Shown piece by piece: positions 34,588 to 47,078 of a DNA stretch of 64,000 bases. This DNA is from Oikopleura dioica (lineage: Eukaryota; Animalia; Chordata). The DNA is taken from positions 15,438,001 through 15,502,000 of the forward strand of contig OU015567.1 in NCBI GenBank assembly GCA_907165135.1, read 5' to 3'. How positions within the stretch are numbered: the first letter of the stretch is position 1; the number at the start of each line of letters is the position of its first letter. The notes beneath the pieces are model-generated. The model searched no databases. It was not told the DNA's origin and saw only the letters and a program-made list of their open reading frames with translations. Position numbers and translations under genes: made by a program.

Positions 34588-36494
34588 CTAATTCGCTGAT
34601 TTTCGCGGCTTCATGCGATTGCTGCATCCATTTCTCCGAAAAACGCCGTTTGATCTAAAAGATCGATCTTTATTGGCATTCATTTGCATGAGAACCTTCA
34701 TGTAAAGCTCAGCGTAAATGTAGTTATTGAAGATTTCGTTGATAAGCGGGGCTAAGCCACCAATATAAGCGAGTCCAAAGAAGATCCACATAAGCACCAT
34801 GAATCTGTAGATTACGAAGATCAAGGAATCTTTGAAAGACGGAGTTATGTCTCCAAAACCAACAGTTGTTAGCGAGATAACGACAAAATAGAAAGCATCG
34901 AGGAAAGTTCTATTTTCGATGAACTTGAACAGAACGGCGGGAATGAACATCGTGATGACCATTCCAACCAGCGTGTAGAGCAGAATTAGCTGCGATTTCT
35001 TTTTGTCACTCAAAGCGCCATTTTCTTTCGAAAAAGAAATATTCGAACAGACTCGCAGATTTTGCCAAGCAAAAAATTGAAGAAGGGAACGCTGGTAAGA
35101 GCATAGAACATGGAAAAGAGCTTCCCTCCTTTTGTCGTCGGATATACATCTCCGTAGCCTATCGTAGTTCCAACAACGCCGGCGAAAAAGAAAGAGTTTC
35201 GAAAGACCCAAATGTCGGGGCATTGGACGATGAGATTGTTGTGGTCATCGATGTAGCTCTCAATCTTCGAAATGGCGGGATGAGTCTTTTCTTTTGGCTT
35301 GGCGGGTTCAGTGCTGTTTCTCTTCTCGAATTGATTCTTGCTGTTTGCCTTGGGTGCAAGTGAAAACAACGAAGACTTTTGGAGAAAAAAATTTAGCTGT
35401 CTTCACTTTTCCTGAAGCTCCTCGAGCGCAGCAATAATCGCTTCTTTAGAGTTGATTTCAAGCTTTAAATTTTCAATGTCAAAGTCTTTTCCGTCAATAA
35501 TCTTTTCGCACTTCGCTTTTTCTTCTTCCAATAATTTTTCAAGGGAAAATCCATTCGATTCATATACCTTCACTTTTTTCTCCAACAATTCCATCTTCAG
35601 AATAAACTCATTCGATCAGGAACAGAGAAGGTCAACAAACCTGTGACTTGTAGAACTGATGAAGCTGTTTGACCACATTTTCATTGATTTCATTAGCAAT
35701 TTTTGCTTGAAATTTACGTCTTTTTGCATTGACCGCCTTATTCTTTGATTTTGGCAGTTGATCGCTGTTATAAATAGTGTAGGGTTCACTTGAGACGACT
35801 TCCATCTGGAGAACCTCTGGCTCGCCGCAAGGATCTTTGTCGATTCCTTCCAGTAAGTCCTCCTTTTTCAATGGCCCGTTGACTGAATCATGAATCCTCT
35901 GAAAGTCAACTTCCAGGCTGGAACAGTTTTCGCTCTTGTCCTTGATCACCAAGTGCGCCTTGCTCTCGCTCGACACCAGGTCATAATACCTCAAGCTCAA
36001 CCCGGCGACATGTTCTCTTGAGATTGGAAAGCGCACGCGGATCGCAACAGTTTCTCGAAACGCCAAGCCAAACGTCACATTTTGCTGCTTTGAATTCAGC
36101 TTAGCAAAACCTACTGCATCCCTTCTTCGTCGAGTTTTGTTTCTATCGTCGTCTACGGGCAAGAAATGGCCATCATCACTGGAGTGATCCTGGTCGGTGA
36201 TATGACCGATTCTTTGTGCTTTGAGATACGCTGTGTTTGGTTAAAATGCTCTTTAAAAATATCGAAGATGCATTTTTATAACCGTTCCGTCATGCGCTTT
36301 TCTTAGCTTCTCCTCGACCATTTGACATGTTTTTTTTCAAGTGGCCTTTCGATGGCCATAAAGCATGCACCTCCCATTAAAACATAGGCTATGTAAACTG
36401 CAAAAACCCATCCAATGTCTTTTAGTGTGGATAGCCTTGAGCCGGCCAAGGAAAGCCGCCTATATTTTCCATTTCTCTTTCGTAAAAGAACCAT
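34588..36494 (-). CDS. KCNK: Two-pore-domain potassium channel (K2P/KCNK) with expanded M1-P1 loop; two apparent 1-nt homopolymer frameshifts
   Basis: M1 WVFAVYIAYVLMGGACFMAIERPLE; P1 WVFRNSFFFAGVVGTTIGYGDVYP; P2 FLDAFYFVVISLTTVGFGDITP. Frame breaks at A8 (36330-37) and T5 (35031-35). Confidence 0.78.
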
Positions 36495-36959
36495 TTTCAA
36501 CTTGTTAAGAAAAAAAGTAACCTTTTTTCTAATCAACTTTATCTGAAGTATTCCCACTGCCTTTGATTAGAGGTTTTAATTTCATGTTCTGCCATCGTTT
36601 GATTACTTTTTTTAAGAGGCTTAGTTTTTCGTGATTTATTAGGGGTATCTCTCAAACTGTCCTGTGATCGCTGACGGAGATGATAGTTGTTCATCCACAA
36701 ATCGGCGAAACCGCCTGAAAAAACTCAATGTTATCAAATTCAATTCGAGCTCCCCCTCTATGATTCGCAAACTATGGCTGAAAATAACTATTGTCTAGCT
36801 TCTATGGCTCTAATTCGGTGAGTACAGTATTAAAATTGTTACCTCCAGGAGCTGGAATAGGCTGAAACATCTTTCAAGTGGTTTTTATTTTATTTCTCTC
36901 AAGAAAAGTTAGAAATCAAGCCGATGTTCTTGGCCGCCAAGGCTAAGCAAAAACTCATC

Positions 36960-39327: not shown

Positions 39328-40248
39328 TTAAACTATGAAAAGATATTCACAAAAAATATTTAAAGATTTTACCCAAAAGATGGTGAATTTGTTGATGGTT
39401 TCGTTGTTGTCGTCGCTAACGTTGTTGTTGTGGAAAGGTTCATATCTTTCATACAGAGGCAATTGAACTTGTGTCCGTAGCGTTTTTTAAATGAGGTAGA
39501 AATTGAGACAAAATGAAAAAATTACTGTTAATTTTGCAAAAGGTTTTCCCACTGGATTTGATTTGTATGACCGGAACTCTGTTTTTATCTTCGTGGTCAA
39601 AAAGTCGCAGTCAATTGATTTCGTGGCATCAATATGATTGCTAGGAACAGGAGCTTCCAAATTGAGGCCATCATTCAACCAAAAATGAGCTTTTTTCTCT
39701 TAGGTTAAGTACCCCATCCAAATTTTTTCGTCAGGACATTTTCCCCAAAGAAAATCTTTGATAAACTCTACTTTTTCAACAGACTCTATCTGAAGTGGTT
39801 TGTCTTGGCGAGATTCGCAGAAATCTACGCAACTATCCCAAGACATCTCTGATGATGAGCTGCTACATTCATCAAGTGCATGTGACGCGGCATTATCTCT
39901 GAAATTTCAGTGCCTTAATTGCTCCAGAAAATTTTATTTAAATTATTCAATATTTCAAAAACAAATTTTTAACCTTGTATAAAAAGCTTCAGCGGAATAT
40001 AAAAAATGAGAAAAATCTCATTTCAGAAACAAATGATTTTCTTGAAAAGAGAAACGAGTTTTTATTCAAAAAAGAAAATTTGAATTTTCATAAAAATAGA
40101 CCGCATTATGCGAGTGAGTTTTTAAAAGTTTTTGGTCATTTGGTATTTACTTGTTCCTGGTTTCTTTTCAGAATAATTCATTTTTAATGAATTTGAAATT
40201 TCATATTGGTTGTCTGAGGGTAGTCCTTGTCTGGAATTCCATTCTTAC

Positions 40249-40288
40249 CTGTCAGACAATCGAAATCAAAGTCAAAAATGGGATGAGT
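40249..40288 (-). ncRNA. Variant spliced-leader exon (SL-like gene copy) with intact GTAAGAAT donor
   Basis: ACTCATCCCATTTTTGActttGATTTCGATTGTCTgACAG|GTAAGAAT: 40 nt with 4 substitutions vs the canonical SL (G18C, C20T, C21T, A36G). Upstream ~100 bp is homologous to the canonical SL promoter. Confidence 0.85.
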
Positions 40289-40437
40289 AAAGAGAAGGGG
40301 TGCTCGATTTCGAGGACGTTTCGCTTCTGCACGCTCCCTTCGGCCTATTTTCAGAAAAACGCGCGGTAGAGGGCGCGTTTTTTCAAACTGGGAAGATCCA
40401 TTTTGAGTTTCATTCGAGTATTTTCTCTCCTATGGGG

Positions 40438-40513
40438 GAGTGGTCCGAGCTCGCCTGTACTGCAATAGCGAGTCAACCCGTGAGAAGAGCGGAGCAAGCC
40501 CCTAACTGCATCC
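40438..40513 (-). pseudogene. U2: 3' half of a U2 snRNA gene (stem-loops III-IV), truncated by a MITE
   Basis: GGATGCAGTTAGGGGCTTGCTCC...TATTGCAGTACAGGCGAGCTCGGACCAC matches the 3' part of the full copies with 3 substitutions and abuts the MITE terminus at 40514. Confidence 0.85.
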
Positions 40514-41487
40514 GACGCGCCTTTTTAAGGTTGTGGCGGTTTTCTAGCCCACTTGCGCCTTATTAAGGCTATAACCTCTCTTTTGGCCTCTCTGGAAAAC
40601 GGACTTCCCTTGGTCGATTTCAAAAATTTAAAGGGCAAACATACTTGTTTTCTCCTAAAGAATTCAAAAAGCCATCAAAAATACTTTTCTCTGGTAATTT
40701 TTTGCTCTAGAATCATTCAAAAATCGCCGATCGGTTTTCCGAGAAAACCGGAAGCTCTGAGGTAAAATAAATCCGACAATGTTATTTAGTAAAGCACATT
40801 CTATGATCCCTTTGGAAAAAATTTCAAGAAATTGTGTAAATTATGATTCTAGTTCTCTCTTCTTTTAAATCTCTTTTGTTTATAGACTGACGCTTGAGAT
40901 CCGCGCAGCCAATCAAAGCGCGATGAATCTCTTGACTCACACGCTCGCCAACAGCGCTCTCTTTTTGGCCTGGAGGATAGCACTCCGCGCAGCGCGTCCA
41001 CGCGCATTTTTATCCTCAGGTGCCAGTACTAACATGGCCCTAGAATGAAAATTTGAAGAGATTTCGAAGATTTTTCCATAGGGATTGTAGAGAAGGCTTT
41101 AATCTATTAATTGATCAAAAAATCTACCTCTGTAATGGTAAAATTCTTCGGAAAACCGATCGGCGTTTTTTAAATGATTGTAAAGTCGAAATTTCAAAAG
41201 AAAAATTAATTTTTGATCGCATTTCTGAAATCTACGATAGATTTTGAGTATATGAGTCTTTTTAATTTTTGAAATCGACCAAGGGTAGTCGGTTTTCCGA
41301 AGAGGCCAAAAGAGAGGTTATAGCCTTAACCCTAGAACACCATACCTTTTGGAATCAGCAGGAAATTCTAAGAACTTTGACCATTTTAGTTTTCGGAAAT
41401 TCTACTTCCGGTCTGATTCTAGAGCCGGAAGTTGACGAAATTGATGAGTAAGGATAAAGTGTGACCTATCAAATTGATGCTTGAATC
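40514..41487. mobile_element. GACG-terminus MITE copy D (one end only), interrupted by a nested TTAA element
   Basis: Starts GACGCGCCTTTTTAAGGTT...CTAGCCCAC and resumes CCCTAGAACACCATACC...ACTTCCGGTCTGATTCTAGAGCCGGAAGT after 41329. Other end not found. Confidence 0.7.
40567..41325. mobile_element. TTAA-flanked MITE with GG termini and ~60-bp TIRs (Kolobok-like), 759 bp
   Basis: TTAA|GGCTATAACCTCTCTTTTGGCCTCT...CCCTTGGTCGATTTCAAAAATT mirrored at the right end ...AGAGGTTATAGCC|TTAA. Removing it restores the host MITE TIR. Confidence 0.78.
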
Positions 41488-41776
41488 TTTCTCATGGAGA
41501 ATTTGAGGAGGAAAAGGAAGGTGTATTGAAGGAAAATTAACAGAAGACATTTTCTTTCTCAGACTTGGCTAAGGATGGATCGGTTTTCTGTTTGATGAAC
41601 GAATACTGGGAAGAAGGAGGACTAGGGATAGTTGTAGCATGAAGGTATTCTAGATAAAAACAGGGACTCGCTCCCCAGCGCAAGCGCCTTTCGCGCAGAA
41701 AATTCTATAAGAATCGAGAGACCATAACGCCCGTTCGAATTTGTCGATACGGACCTTCTCGAGCAGCGGGCAAGGT

Positions 41777-41961
41777 ATCGCTTCCGGCCTTTGTGGCTAA
41801 GATCAAGTGTAGTATCTGTTCTTCTCAGTGTGACAGCTGGGACCGTCCCTACTGGGACGTCTATTGTCACCCTGATTTTGGAACTAGGGATGCAGTTAGG
41901 GGCTTGCTCCGCTCTTCCCACGGGTTGACTCGCTATTGCAGTACCGGCGAGCTCGGCCCAC
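41777..41961 (+). ncRNA. U2: U2 snRNA
   Basis: ATCGCTTCCGGCCTTTGTGGCTAAGATCAAGTGTAGTATCTGTTCTT 5' end with branch-site recognition GTAGTA. Stems IIa/IIb/IIc can pair; Sm site GATTTTGG; stem IV loop TATTGCAGTA. Confidence 0.95.
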
Positions 41962-42033
41962 TCCCCATGGGGAGAAACAATTCAAACGAAACTCAAAAGG
42001 ATCTTCCCAGATGTATACGGGCGTTCACGCTCC

Positions 42034-42613
42034 GACGTGCTTTTAAGGTTAACGAAGTTTTCCAGCCCACTTCCGCCTTACAGACCCCCAACACCATACC
42101 TTTTAGAATCACCAGAGAATTTTAAGAACTTTGATGGTTTTAGATTCTAGAAAGTCCACTTCCGGTCGATTCTAGAGCCGGAAGTTGAGGAAATTTGGGA
42201 ATACTGGTAGAGTGTGACCTATCAAATCGATGCCCAGAAGATTTTGAGTCATCCTATGATCAATATATCAGAAGACATAGTCTCAAACATGGCCAAACCG
42301 ACCGGTAAAATTATGTAAAAAGCCATAAATTGATGATTTTTTCAGTTTTATTCGGTTTGTCTGACCGCGGTTCGGGTTGGTTACCCTTCCAAAAGACTAG
42401 AAATTTCACAAGCTTTAATTTAATAGGTCACATGCATGCCTTTATTAAGTTTTAAGCCAACTTCCGGCTCTAGAATCGACCGGAAGTGGACTTTTCTAGA
42501 ATCTAAAACCATCAAAGTTCTTAAAATTCTCTGGTGATTCTAAAAGGTATGGTGTTGGGGGTCTGTAAGGCGGAAGTGGGCTGGAAAACTTCGTTAACCT
42601 TAAAAAGCACGTC
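42034..42613. mobile_element. GACG-terminus MITE copy A, 580 bp, 3-bp TSD TCC
   Basis: ~150-bp TIRs GACGTGCTTTTAAGGTTAACG... / ...AACCTTAAAAAGCACGTC with TCC on both sides. The mirror arm has the empty site CACGT-TCC-GCACTC at ~45755-45770. Confidence 0.9.
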
Positions 42614-42813
42614 TCCGCACTCGCTGTCTGAAACGGAGTACTCGCTGCATTTGACATGAGTTGGACTGAGGAACTCAATAAGAAAGTTAATTGTGAGAAT
42701 ATGCCAATAAACTCATGTCCCTGATTAAACTCATTTTTCAATTAATTATTCAATTATTGAACTTATTCAACAATAAAACTTAGAATATAGTGTGACTTGA
42801 TGCGGCAGCCTTC

Positions 42814-42932
42814 GCTTAGCGTCATACCGCGTAGAATAAACCAGTTCTCGTCCGATCACTGAAGTCAAACTACGACGGGCGAGGTTAGTACTTACATGGG
42901 TGACCGGTTGGGAATACCTCGTGCGCTAAGCA
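42814..42932 (+). rRNA. 5S: 5S rRNA
   Basis: 119 nt GCTTAGCGTCATACC...AGTACTTACATGGGTGACCGGTTGGGAATACCTCGTGCGCTAAGCA with pairing ends and a TTTT Pol III terminator. Confidence 0.96.
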
Positions 42933-43188
42933 TTTTGACTTTTTCGGCACGTAAATGATTTACTAATCGTCCTTTTTGTGAGGACCCCTTTACATAAATA
43001 CTGAGTACACTGATAGCAAAGAAAAGTCACGATGTTTGTGTGAGGCAAGTATTGACAGTTGAGCGTGGCCCGGCGGGCCGCGTGGCGCTTGTGAAAAAGC
43101 GCCCTCTGTCACGCGCTTTTCTGAAAGAGGCCGAAAATAGGAGCGAGCAGCGACAAAACGACCTCGAAATCAAGCACCCCTTCTTTTT

Positions 43189-43280
43189 ACTCATCCCATT
43201 TTTGAGTCCGATTTCGATTGTCTAACAGGTAAGAATCGTCTCCATGCCCATTCTCTCCTATCCCTCTCGCCTCTTACAAA
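43189..43280 (+). ncRNA. SL: Spliced-leader RNA gene (canonical 40-nt exon 43189-43228; 3' end approximate)
   Basis: ACTCATCCCATTTTTGAGTCCGATTTCGATTGTCTAACAG|GTAAGA is the known O. dioica SL exon plus donor. Confidence 0.95.
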
Positions 43281-43291
43281 CAAGAAACTTT

Positions 43292-43883
43292 GACGTGCTT
43301 TTTTAAGGTTAAGGAAGTTATTTCACCCACTTCCTTGTTTTTAGACCATACATATTTGGAATCAGTGGAGAAAATCTAGAAACTTGACCGTTTTAGTTTT
43401 CGAAATTCACTTCCGGTTACGATTCTAGAGCCGGAAATGCACGAAATTTATAAGAAAAGCATGCATATGACCTATCAAATTAAAGCTTACAACAAGTCAA
43501 GTCATTAAGGATCAAAACCGAGTCCAACCGTCGTCAAAAACCGCCGGTAAACAACCGGTAAAAATTGAAAAAATTCTCACTAAATCATGCTTTTTTCATA
43601 GTTTTACCGGTCAGTTTAACCGCGGTTGGGACTGTTTCTTCTAATTAATCGATGATGAGATGACTGAAAATCTTCTGCGCATCCATTTGATACATCACAC
43701 TTTACCCTGACTCCAAAATTTAGCCTACTTCCGGCTCTAGAATCGCAACCGGAAGTGAATTTCGAAAAACTAAAACGGTCAAGTTTCTAGATTTTCTCCA
43801 CTGATTCCAAATATGTATGGTGTTCTGGGTCTAAAAACAAGGAAGTGGGCGAAATAACTTCCTTAACCTTAAAAAAGCACGTC
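43292..43883. mobile_element. GACG-terminus MITE copy B, 592 bp, 3-bp TSD TTT
   Basis: TIRs GACGTGCTTTTTTAAGGTTAAGG... / ...AACCTTAAAAAAGCACGTC with TTT on both sides. The mirror arm has the empty site CAAGAAAC-TTT-ATGAACAGC at ~45081-45100. Confidence 0.9.
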
Positions 43884-43954
43884 TTTATGAACAGCGGGCT
43901 CCCGCCCAGTCCAGACACTCTTAAAAAAGTGGCCGGAGATTTCTGGCCGACTTC

Positions 43955-45020
43955 GACGCGCTTTTCCAGGTGGTGGAGGTTTTCTAGCCCATTCACGCCG
44001 TATAAACCCAAGAACACCATACCTTTTGAAATCAGCAGGAGATTCTTAGAACTTTGACCATCATAGCTCTTGAAAATTCCACTTCCGGTCCGATTCTAGA
44101 GCCGGAAGTTGACGAAATTTCGGAGTAAGGATAAAGTGTGACCTATCAAATTGATTCTCAGAAGAGTCATCTCATTATCGATTCATTTAACCCGTTGCCG
44201 AGCGCGTAGCATCCTGAATGCTACGCGCGCTTTCAATGCTTTTAAGGAAAAGTTAACATTGAGAATTCTCATAAATTTTTTGATTTTATAAAATTTCAAC
44301 CTTTTTCAAATAGATCTTACGCTTTAAAATTATAAAAATATTGTTGTTTGCCGCTAGAAAATGCAAAAGAAAAAGTGAAGTCAGCCCTCGCGGCGCTTCC
44401 TTTCTATTGTTTCACAGCGCGCCATTGTCTTTTTCTCTAGACTTGAAAAACGGCGCCGCTGAAGGAACCGTCATTCTTTCTTGATTTTCGGTCTTTTACC
44501 TTTTCGGAAAATTTGTGAAAAAGTATGAATCTAGTAGAAAAGGCTTCAGTGAATACCCACAAGTAAAAATTATGAATAAAGACAAAGTAATAGTGGGAGA
44601 AAAATGCGCTCAAAGTCGTAGCATTTCGGATGCTTCGCGAGCGGCAAGCCAATGTAGCGTAGCGCTCGGCAACGGGTTAAAGAAACAAACTCAACCGCCG
44701 TCGTACCGACCGGCAAAAATATGGAAAAATGCATAAATTTATGATTTTTTTATTTTTAGCGATTGATTTGACCTCGGTCGGGATTGATTTTCTCTTGGAT
44801 GATAGGGAATCTTCTGAGAATCAATTTGATAGGTCACACTTTATCCTTACTCCGAAATTTCGTCAACTTCCGGCTCTAGAATCGGACCGGAAGTGGAATT
44901 TTCAAGAGCTATGAGGGTCAAAGTTCTAAGAATCTCCTGCTGATTTCAAAAGGTATGGTGTTCTTGGGTTTATACGGCGTGAATGGGCTAGCAAACCTCC
45001 ACCACCTGGAAAAGCGCGTC
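43955..45020. mobile_element. GACG-terminus MITE copy C at the centre of the inverted duplication (~576 bp without the nested insert)
   Basis: GACGCGCTTTTCCAGG... / ...CCTGGAAAAGCGCGTC, with the mirror extending ~210 bp. Interior is homologous to copy A. Flanks are inverted (TTC / GAA), not a direct TSD. Confidence 0.85.
44191..44676. mobile_element. piggyBac-type MITE, 486 bp, nested in MITE C
   Basis: TTAA|CCCGTTGCCGAGCGC ... GCGCTCGGCAACGGG|TTAA (15-bp perfect TIR). Subterminal palindrome CGTAGCAT....ATGCTACG at the left end and, with a spacer, at the right end. Confidence 0.88.
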
Positions 45021-45100
45021 GAAGTCGGCCAGAAATCTCCGGCCACCTTTTTTAAGAGTGTCTGGACTGGGCGGGAGCCCGCTGTTCATAAAGTTTCTTG

Positions 45101-45192
45101 TTTGTAAGAGGCGAGAGGGATAGGAGAGAGTGGGCATGGAGACGATTCTTACCTGTTAGACAATCGAAATCGGACTCAAAAATGGGATGAGT
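45101..45192 (-). ncRNA. SL: Spliced-leader RNA gene, second canonical copy (exon 45153-45192)
   Basis: Exact reverse complement of the 40-nt SL exon followed by GTAAGA. One substitution in the intron moiety vs copy 1. Confidence 0.95.
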
Positions 45193-45456
45193 AAAGAGAA
45201 GGGGTGCTTGATTTCGAGGTCGTTTTGTCGCTGCTCGCTCCTATTTTCGGCCTCTTTTCAGAAAAGCGCGTGACAGAGGGCGCTTTTTCACAAGCGCCAC
45301 GCCGCCCGCCGGGCCACGCTCAACGCTCAATGCTTGTCTCCCACAAACATGGTGACTTTTTCTCTATCAGTGTATCAAATTAGCTCGATTTATCTTATTT
45401 GCAATTTAAAGGGGTCCTCACAAAAAGGATGATCTACTTCCTGAAAAAAGTCAAAA

Positions 45457-45575
45457 TGCTTAGCGCACGAGGTATTCCCAACCGGTCACCCATGTAAGTA
45501 CTAACCCCGCCCGTCGTAGTTTGACTTCAGTGATCGGACGAGAACTGGTTTATTCTACGCGGTATGACGCTAAGC
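45457..45575 (-). rRNA. 5S: 5S rRNA, second copy
   Basis: Reverse complement of 42814-42932 with one substitution (GGGCGGGG vs GGGCGAGG). TTTT terminator. Confidence 0.96.
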
Positions 45576-45847
45576 GAAGGCTTCTCCTTCAAGTCACATT
45601 ATATACTGAGTTTTACTTTTGAATTAGTTCAATTATTGAATAAAGAAGGGGAAAAATGGACATGAGTTTATTGGTATGTTCACGCGATTGAACTTCTTTT
45701 TGAGTTCATCACTGCGACACGTCTCAAACGCACCGACAACTCCGTTTCAGACATTGAGTGCGGAACGTGGACGCCTGTATTTAACTGGATCTCCAGTTTC
45801 TAAATCTGTTTTGAGTCTCATTTGGATTGTTTCTCCCCCGTGGGGGA

Positions 45848-46033
45848 GTGGGCCGAGCTCGCCGGTACTGCAATAGCGAGTCAACCCGTGGGAAGAGCGG
45901 AGCAAGCCCCTAACTGCATCCCTAGTTCCAAAAATCAGGGTGACAATAGACGTCCCAGTAGGGACGGTCCCAGCTGTCACACTGAGAAGAACAGATACTA
46001 CACTTGATCTTAGCCACAAAGGCCGGAAGCGAT
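45848..46033 (-). ncRNA. U2: U2 snRNA, second full copy
   Basis: Reverse complement of copy 1 except for a canonical five-U Sm site (GATTTTTGG). Confidence 0.95.
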
Positions 46034-46511
46034 ACCTTGCCCGCTGCTCGAGAAGGTCCGTATCGACAAATTCGAACGGGCGTTATGGTCTCTCGATTCT
46101 TATAGAATTTTCTGCGCGAAAGGCGCTTGCGCTGGGGAGCGAGTCCCTGTTTTTTATCTAGAATACCTTCATGCTACAACTATCCCTAGTCCTCCTTCTT
46201 CCCAGTATTCGTTCATCAAACAGAAAACCGATCCATCCTTAGCCAAGTCTGAGAAACAAAATTTATTCAGCATAAATTACGTCTAATGAATGTCTTGTCT
46301 GGGCTCTTACTCAATAATCTCCTGTCAATTTTCCTTCAATACACCTTCCTTTTCCTACTTAAAATTCTCCATGAGAAACACTCAAGGTTATTTTTAACTC
46401 AGAATGACCCAAAACAAGCAACAGTTGACCTAGAAAAGGAAGAGCCGTGGGGGATTTGCACTTGGCTTGATATTGACATTTTTTTATCAAGATCTCGCTG
46501 ACTGTTTTTGC

Positions 46512-47078
46512 TCATCTTGAATTCTGCATTTCCATCCTACCGATGGCCTTGGAAATTCGTTTCTCACACAAATTATCGTCAATTCCTGGTTTTCCATCTC
46601 CGGAATTTAGCTGAACCGATGCTCCCGGATTATCTGTCTGCTTGATAGAATTAACAGTCAGCGATTCCACTGAATGATAAATGGCTCTCAAATATCTCAA
46701 ATGGAAAGCCGCTTCGCAAAAATGATCTTTCCAATCAAGTCTGAAATGCTGGCGAAGCCGCTCCGCGGCTTTAATTTTAACAAAAGCCGCTACACGACAA
46801 TTTTTGAAACCCTGACTCAGGTTTTCTACATAGCCTTTGCCAAAATGTAGCTTTTTATCTACATCTTTGGAGCGATAACTTTTCGCTATATCTCGTCTAA
46901 TAGGATTACTCGTCTGCATCAAAGCAGATAAACCAAAAAAAGCGGGGCGCAGCGGGAATATTTCGGCGAAGCGGTGTATTCGTTGTTTTTGTTTTGAAAA
47001 CGGGACGAACGTGCTGAGCTTGATCCACTTGTGTGACAAGTTGCATCTTTCTTGTTCTTTATCTCGATCGGCACTCAA
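46512..47078 (-). other. Open frame of unknown status that runs through a repeat-family segment
   Basis: 188-aa ORF whose middle (~46720-46830) contains CCTGACTCAGG and AAGCCGC..GCGGCTT modules. Flanks look protein-like; no family recognised. Confidence 0.25.

Follow-up and report, generated by a model that had tools for sequence, protein, structure and literature searches.

Genes for 5S ribosomal RNA (rRNA) are linked to spliced-leader (SL) RNA, histone, ribosomal DNA and small nuclear RNA (snRNA) genes in many taxa (PMC3464664). Among animals, linkage between 5S and snRNA genes has been described in Solea (U1, U2 and U5), Crassostrea (U2) and Asellus (U1) (reviewed in PMC3464664). In Perkinsus the SL genes cluster with U2 and U4 (PMC3101222). 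These repeated joinings of 5S or SL genes to spliceosomal snRNA genes are usually read as a consequence of 5S mobility and not of function (PMC3464664, PMC3101222). All three kinds of gene come together in Diplonema papillatum, where SL RNA, 5S rRNA and U2 snRNA form a tandem repeat unit that its authors called exceptional (PMC10161547). In the tunicate Oikopleura dioica, inverted repeats of 5S and SL RNA genes are a published arrangement: the passage of Bliznina et al. 2021 that treats them, citing Ganot et al. 2004, counts 27 copies, 22 of them in inverted repeats (PMC8008620). Here we analyze a 64-kb stretch of the O. dioica genome (contig OU015567.1, positions 15,438,001 to 15,502,000 of the forward strand; "the window"), in which U2 genes have become part of such a repeat. 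Coordinates given without a contig label are positions in the window. Genome-wide counts and searches were made in the O. dioica OKI2018_I69 assembly (64,281,565 bases in 19 contigs), of which C1, C2, C4 and C5 are contig labels.

The U2 locus is an inverted duplication in which each arm carries a U2 gene, a 5S gene and an SL RNA gene, in that order and all pointing toward the centre. We think it likely that the locus is one of the dispersed convergent 5S/SL palindromes of this genome and that the duplication also copied a neighbouring U2 gene, so that U2 would be a passenger that is present because the arms are long, and not a component of a dosage cassette. It has every feature of the O. dioica 5S-SL inverted repeats: 5S followed by SL on the same strand, a spacer of about 250 bp between them, the canonical 40-nt SL, a convergent pair with SL innermost, sequence homology of the unit, and membership of a set dispersed over the chromosomes. 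It differs from the other palindromes in that its arms reach about 1.3 kb past 5S and hold a complete U2 gene with its promoter, in that the arms are more diverged (spacers about 80% identical, as against 97-99.5% whole-arm identity elsewhere), and in that it bears two later insertions of a miniature inverted-repeat transposable element (MITE). We found no mention of snRNA genes in O. dioica 5S-SL repeats in the literature, where Ganot et al. 2004 was considered only through Bliznina et al. 2021.

What is shared with Diplonema is the joining of the same three RNA genes within a single duplicated unit, which in O. dioica is seen in both arms and partly in a third unit. However, the Diplonema units stand head to tail in tandem arrays of up to 27 in a row and contain most of its 163 U2 genes, whereas O. 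dioica has a single palindromic pair and one decayed copy, with 2 of its 7 U2 genes, and so has neither the tandem arrangement nor the majority of U2 genes in it. The two triads, one in a euglenozoan protist and the other in a tunicate, are of independent origin. The Solea, Crassostrea, Asellus and Perkinsus linkages are also tandem arrays, in contrast to the MITE-centred palindrome at the O. dioica U2 locus. An earlier note on this DNA, written from its letters alone, was right in stating that SL-5S linkage is described for O. dioica (as the inverted repeats in the passage of PMC8008620 cited above) and that U2-5S linkage occurs in some taxa (the Solea and Crassostrea cases; PMC3464664). Its suggestion that the arrangement was undescribed does not hold, because palindromic 5S-SL repeats have been published and the SL-5S-U2 triad is known as a tandem unit in Diplonema papillatum (PMC10161547).

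The limits of the duplication, as given by inverted self-homology, and the genes and putative promoter boxes of its arms are:

41480-46386, whole inverted duplication: left arm 41480-44168, non-palindromic loop 44169-44806, right arm 44807-46386
41720-41731, plus strand, proximal sequence element (PSE)-like box of the left U2 gene, core ACCATAACG, at -57 to -46 of U2
41777-41966, plus strand, U2 snRNA gene of the left arm (Rfam, 147.7 bits)
42814-42932, plus strand, 5S rRNA gene of the left arm (Rfam)
43189-43284, plus strand, SL RNA gene of the left arm: exon 43189-43228, GT donor at 43229, conserved 3' part to about 43284
45097-45192, minus strand, SL RNA gene of the right arm: canonical exon 45192-45153, then GT
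45457-45575, minus strand, 5S rRNA gene of the right arm (Rfam), 99.2% identical to the left copy
45843-46033, minus strand, U2 snRNA gene of the right arm (Rfam, 155.5 bits)
46079-46090, PSE-like box of the right U2 gene (minus-strand gene), core ACCATAACG

Inverted homology ends at 41480 and 46386, within 8 bp of the ends (41488 and 46378) that the earlier note had assigned to a duplication of about 4.9 kb, and outside these points the arms share no match. An insertion/deletion difference of about 55 bp distinguishes the arms near the outer edge. The shared gene order and orientation that the note had described is borne out by the Rfam matches and the canonical SL exons, and its unit of about 950 bp in the insertion-free right arm measures about 937 bp from the U2 start to the SL RNA end. 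At the gathering threshold, Rfam finds exactly four small-RNA genes in the whole window, namely the two U2 and the two 5S rRNA genes. A permissive Rfam scan of 39800-46800 found nothing extra except a U2 fragment; Rfam has no family for the O. dioica SL RNA. The 40-nt exon in both arms is identical to the O. dioica spliced leader printed in PMC6883708.

Both U2 copies have the sequence features expected of a functional U2 snRNA gene: a match over positions 1-192 of the U2 model, an Sm site, and the PSE-like box upstream. In the left copy the U run of the Sm site is one T shorter, although it still fits the Sm consensus, and the terminal 3' hairpin is shortened. A box with the ACCATAACG core occurs at about -57 to -46 of all 7 U2 genes in the genome, and because a U5 gene and one U6 gene have it upstream as well, we read it as a candidate PSE. 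The left 5S gene has a TATA-like box at -30 to -24 (42784-42790) and a T-run terminator directly 3' of the gene. 5S genes carry an internal control region for RNA polymerase III, and we assume on general grounds that the arm copies do too. For SL RNA, a separate conserved region of about 160 bp precedes the gene. Past the SL exon about 55 more bases are conserved among copies, which places the gene ends at about 43284 (left) and 45097 (right), and the predicted fold of the SL RNA is no better than that of shuffled sequences (z -0.25). The spacer from 5S to SL is 256 bp in the left arm and 264 bp in the right, within the range of 216-270 bp at other loci. Taken together, U2, 5S and SL RNA appear to be three separate transcription units, each with its own type of promoter.

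Identity between the arms varies sharply along their length. It is 99-100% over the U2 gene and the 230 bp upstream of it, about 80% with many gaps over the U2 3' flank and the region upstream of 5S, 99.2% in the 5S gene, and 92% with 37 gap columns in the first part of the 5S-SL spacer. It then rises to 95% from -158 to -1 of SL, 100% in the SL exon, 98% in the SL 3' part, 100% in the 65 bp between SL and a central transposable element, and 98% in the terminal inverted repeats (TIRs) of that element. Among about 30 units, the two arms are each other's closest relatives both upstream of 5S (78.5%, against at most 54% to any other unit) and in the 5S-SL spacer (84% against at most 79%). They are therefore products of a local inverted duplication, one old enough for about 20% neutral divergence. 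We infer an old duplication also from the state of the left arm, which has since been hit by two MITE insertions while the spacers drifted to about 80% identity. The near-identical tracts (U2 with its 230 bp upstream, and SL inward to the centre) most likely reflect gene conversion between the arms combined with selection on the genes, since long stretches of perfect identity are also present outside the genes, a sign of patchy conversion besides selection.

This divergence bears on whether the palindrome could be an assembly artefact, a fold-back derived from a chimeric long read. The assembly is Nanopore-based, which would allow for such reads. However, a fold-back read would yield identical arms, and the spacers are only about 80% identical. 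The arms also differ by the two MITE insertions, which have target site duplications (TSDs) in one arm and empty sites in the other, by the ~55-bp insertion/deletion, and by substitutions at about 20% of spacer sites, and the same architecture is present at 20 loci and has been published from independent data. An artefact is thus extremely unlikely and, judged by its arms, the palindrome is real. The earlier note had reached the same view because the arms differ by insertions, and the TSDs and empty sites of these insertions, with the ~80% spacers, support its argument.

To the left of the palindrome is a third, degenerate unit, separated from it by the remains of a MITE of the same family as the insertions in the arms:

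40249-40513, minus strand, degenerate third unit: U2 3' half, SL upstream region and variant SL exon
40514-41482, broken MITE arm, a single TIR arm in two parts (40514-40562 and 41330-41482)
40563-41329, nested element of 767 bp that splits the broken MITE arm, with 83-nt TIRs that are 88% identical

The U2 3' half (40513-40396) is severed at 40514 by a MITE end and is joined directly to the SL upstream region, the 5S-bearing segment being deleted relative to the arms. The SL exon (40288-40249) has 4 substitutions and keeps the GT donor, its 3' part is unrelated to that of the other copies, and it is probably a pseudogene. The inner break of the MITE arm coincides with the left edge of the palindrome (41482). 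The triad has therefore been duplicated at least twice locally, and one copy has decayed.

Genome-wide there are 47 5S genes in 23 loci, of which 40 form 20 convergent pairs, always plus then minus and with SL innermost; we scored at least 40 SL genes, out of 74 candidates. In a BLAST comparison of the insertion-free right arm with the 5S and U2 loci, the unit common to the loci runs from about 5 bp before 5S to the SL RNA 3' end, a length of about 490 bp. Over this length the arm is 80-88% identical to the other 5S-SL loci compared, with 94-99% in matches to 5S only and 93-97% in the SL region. Beyond the common unit, the arms at other loci (measured within 1.5 kb of the 5S gene) continue for 37 to about 670 bp past 5S into locus-specific DNA. 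At the U2 locus they extend about 1.33 kb past 5S, and it is because of this reach that U2 lies inside the palindrome. We also considered a composite or foldback transposon carrying the genes, and ruled it out because the outer ends of the arms vary by locus and contain locus-specific DNA. At C5:12484916-12485287, two convergent 5S genes start 253 bp apart with no room for two SL genes between them, in what looks like a 5S-only mini-palindrome.

Five of the seven U2 genes in the genome are solitary and two are in the palindrome. BLAST homology between the arm and the five solitary loci covers the U2 gene with only about 7-20 nt on either side. We also searched the genome with the stretch from the U2 upstream region to the U2-5S spacer, the gene included; all 8 of the 8 candidates were scored. 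Three are local (both arms and the U2 fragment), and the other five are the solitary genes, in which similarity is confined to the gene itself. Neither the U2 flanks nor the U2-5S spacer thus occur outside the palindrome locus. Between the right-arm U2 gene and the five solitary copies one base differs, C for T in GGATG[C/T]AGT, with the locus-specific C in both arm copies and in the degenerate U2 fragment and T in all five solitary copies. A scan of marine metagenomes yielded four U2 contigs of a diverged Oikopleura lineage, which correspond to solitary U2 loci and not to the palindrome–for example, one is the orthologue of the solitary locus at C1:12.698 Mb (68-75% flank identity). The C of GGATG[C/T]AGT is also found in three of these contigs, and it seems that the dispersed solitary copies underwent a joint change that bypassed the palindrome copies. 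This variant suggests that the palindrome copies evolve apart from the five solitary ones. In three of the diverged-lineage contigs there is no 5S or SL gene within 1-5 kb downstream of U2.

These counts bear directly on the proposal of the earlier note, which saw here a U2-5S-SL cassette that fixes the relative dosage of the three RNAs and was amplified as a palindrome. Such a cassette would account for the order and orientation kept in both arms and partly in the degenerate unit, and for the 99-100% identity of genes and promoters between the arms, and the triad is after all a repeat unit in Diplonema. However, it holds only 2 of the 7 U2 genes, 2 of the 47 5S genes and 2 of at least 40 SL genes, so stoichiometry is not fixed; the unit common to loci is without U2, the snRNA partner elsewhere being U6 or U5; the three diverged-lineage contigs have U2 without 5S or SL downstream; and each gene appears to have its own promoter and polymerase. 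We consider a dosage cassette very improbable. What survives of the proposal is a linked and palindromically duplicated triad. It is not a standard unit, as the shared unit is 5S-SL only and 5 of 7 U2 genes are solitary, and a genome-wide count of U2-5S-SL units, in one assembly, gives a single inverted pair and the decayed copy.

Other snRNA genes also lie next to 5S-SL units. Rfam identifies 29 snRNA genes in the genome (4 U1, 7 U2, 4 U4, 8 U5 and 6 U6), and 5 of the 29, at 3 independent loci, are less than 1.1 kb upstream of a 5S gene and in the same direction. Three such loci compare with 0.049 expected (Poisson P about 2e-5). The snRNA genes are non-randomly associated with 5S-SL units, a genome-wide association that is modestly new. 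In the palindrome at C1:13.433-13.437 Mb, a U6 gene is located 160 bp upstream of 5S on both arms (13433434-13433540, plus strand, and 13437242-13437348, minus strand). The arm boundary is about 66 bp upstream of the left U6 copy, which keeps a TATA-like element and is without the ACCATAAC box. At the third locus, a U5 gene (C2:5593670-5593782, minus strand) is located about 600 bp upstream of a minus-strand 5S gene, in the same direction and just outside the arm, and a fragment of the MITE family (C2:5593506-5593613) lies between the two, about 60 bp downstream of U5. With these U6 and U5 cases, linkage of snRNA genes to 5S-SL units recurs in the genome and its partners change; U2 is one example, and there is no fixed triad.

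An association of this kind could arise if small-RNA genes cluster for functional reasons, for example in open chromatin bound by SNAPc and TFIII factors or in a common nuclear body, with selection keeping U2 near 5S-SL. The excess of adjacent loci is what this explanation predicts. Nevertheless, most snRNA genes (24 of 29) have no 5S gene anywhere near them, the left-arm U6 at C1:13.43 Mb lost its PSE-like box at the arm boundary, and a bias in insertion or duplication would give the same pattern. We regard functional clustering as improbable, although less so than a dosage cassette.

The remaining question is how an arm-length passenger could have been picked up, and here the transposable elements of the locus are informative. 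E1, E2 and the central element all belong to one MITE family, which has termini GACG(C/T)GC, long TIRs and variable 3-bp TSDs, and for which there are only about 134 candidate places in the 64 Mb genome:

42034-42613, MITE E1, 580 bp, termini GACGTGC...GCACGTC, 113-nt TIRs that are 100% identical, TSD TCC
43292-43883, MITE E2, 592 bp, same family as E1, TSD TTT
43955-45020, central MITE, 1066 bp, family of E1 and E2, TIRs 43955-44168 and 44807-45020 (214 nt, 98% identical)
44187-44680, nested element in the loop of the central MITE, 486 bp at 44191-44676, 15-nt perfect CCC...GGG TIRs and TTAA on both sides, as read from the sequence

In the left arm, E1 follows the U2 gene at a distance of 67 bp and E2 is inserted where the SL RNA gene ends (3' end), and the empty sites in the right arm show a single TCC and a single TTT, respectively. 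The central MITE is different: its two flanks mirror each other (TTC to the left, GAA to the right) and it has no direct TSD. A 71-bp unique stretch, the TIR, the loop, the second TIR and the second 71-bp stretch form one unbroken palindrome. The nested 486-bp element has features typical of piggyBac-like MITEs, and we found no second copy of it within the window. Elsewhere in the genome, at C4:6603540-6604297, a full-length MITE copy (C4:6603648-6604220) has a weak, sub-threshold match to U1 on each side (46.7 and 42.3 bits); the MITE may have split a U1 gene, or its own ends may be U1-like.

We surveyed 14 convergent pairs and 4 singleton 5S loci for this family. MITE-family DNA is present between the two SL genes in 10 of the 14 pairs and near none of the 4 singletons. 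At three loci (the U2 locus, C1:13436019 and C2:5493564) the central MITE has no direct TSD, in contrast to the clean 3-bp TSDs of the non-central E1 and E2. The central element at C1:13436019 abuts both SL 3' ends symmetrically, and at C2:5493564 two MITE ends cut both SL genes at the identical nucleotide, an arrangement that one later insertion cannot account for.

Large palindromes can be seeded by short inverted repeats, and transposable elements can mediate inverted duplications, as in foldback elements and the alternative transposition of Ac/Ds. The U2 locus resembles these systems in having 214-nt MITE TIRs at its centre of symmetry, one flank present in inverted form on both sides, and no TSD; it differs in that its outer left edge abuts a broken MITE and in that we infer the mechanism. 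On balance we favour the view that the palindrome formed by fold-back or template switching at the long-TIR MITE that is now its hinge. A MITE would first have inserted next to a 5S-SL unit; its TIRs would then have served for fold-back or template switching, by which one flank was copied in inverted form over a distance that differed from locus to locus. At the U2 locus this copying would have reached about 1.3 kb upstream of 5S and taken the neighbouring U2 gene with it. The left arm would later have gained E1 and E2, with conversion between the arms and selection keeping some tracts near-identical.

The main rival to the hinge step is that the palindrome formed in some other way and that the MITE inserted later, targeting palindrome centres or the 3' ends of snRNA-type genes, after which conversion erased its TSD. 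The family does insert at such places: E2 is a genuine insertion, its position at the very 3' end of SL is also that of the central copy at C1:13436019, and E1 and the fragment at C2:5.59 Mb are both within 70 bp downstream of an snRNA gene. Later insertion is nevertheless at odds with central copies that have no direct TSD at three loci, with the identical-base truncation of both SL genes at C2:5493564, with the absence of the MITE from the singleton 5S loci examined (0 of 4), and with arms and TIRs that make one continuous inverted repeat in which the MITE interior is the sole spacer. We therefore find it doubtful, but less so than functional clustering.

Several points weigh against a simple fold-back at the MITE and against U2 as a mere passenger. 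Four of the 14 palindromes have no central copy of the family, a missing 3-bp TSD could have been erased by arm-to-arm conversion, and the meeting of the left palindrome edge with the broken MITE arm at 41482 is not predicted by a simple hinge model; all three would sit well with later insertion. Given the degenerate U2-SL unit, local duplication of the triad happened more than once. The age and the order of events at the U2 locus are themselves a matter of reconstruction. Finally, snRNA genes at three loci against 0.05 expected imply that the presence of U2 is no pure positional accident, and that there is some targeting or shared chromatin preference. A wider version of the fold-back explanation takes in this last point: the MITE would land beside SL or snRNA-type genes and its fold-back would make 5S-SL palindromes, repeatedly sweeping up U2, U6 (at C1:13.43 Mb) and the adjacent U5 (at C2:5.59 Mb). 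We put this forward tentatively, as a possibility with somewhat less than even chances.

Leftward of the palindrome, at a distance of 5 kb, is the nearest recognizable gene, which encodes a two-pore-domain potassium channel (K2P; 34588-36557, minus strand; Ion_trans_2, E = 1.7e-12). Relatives of the channel exon (75% identity) occur only on metagenome contigs of at most 4.3 kb, which do not reach the palindrome locus. An open reading frame adjoins the right arm (46512-47078, minus strand), and it has no Pfam match and no relatives by word search.

The U2 locus shows how far the known O. dioica 5S-SL palindromes extend and what they carry. It reveals no new regulatory device, because the triad is local and a three-gene linkage of this kind has already been described in a protist. 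What it offers is a countable and testable link between one MITE family and the formation of palindromes. If it is true, MITE-hinged fold-back that sweeps up neighbouring snRNA genes would give a compact genome a way, driven by a transposon, of duplicating genes for small RNAs.

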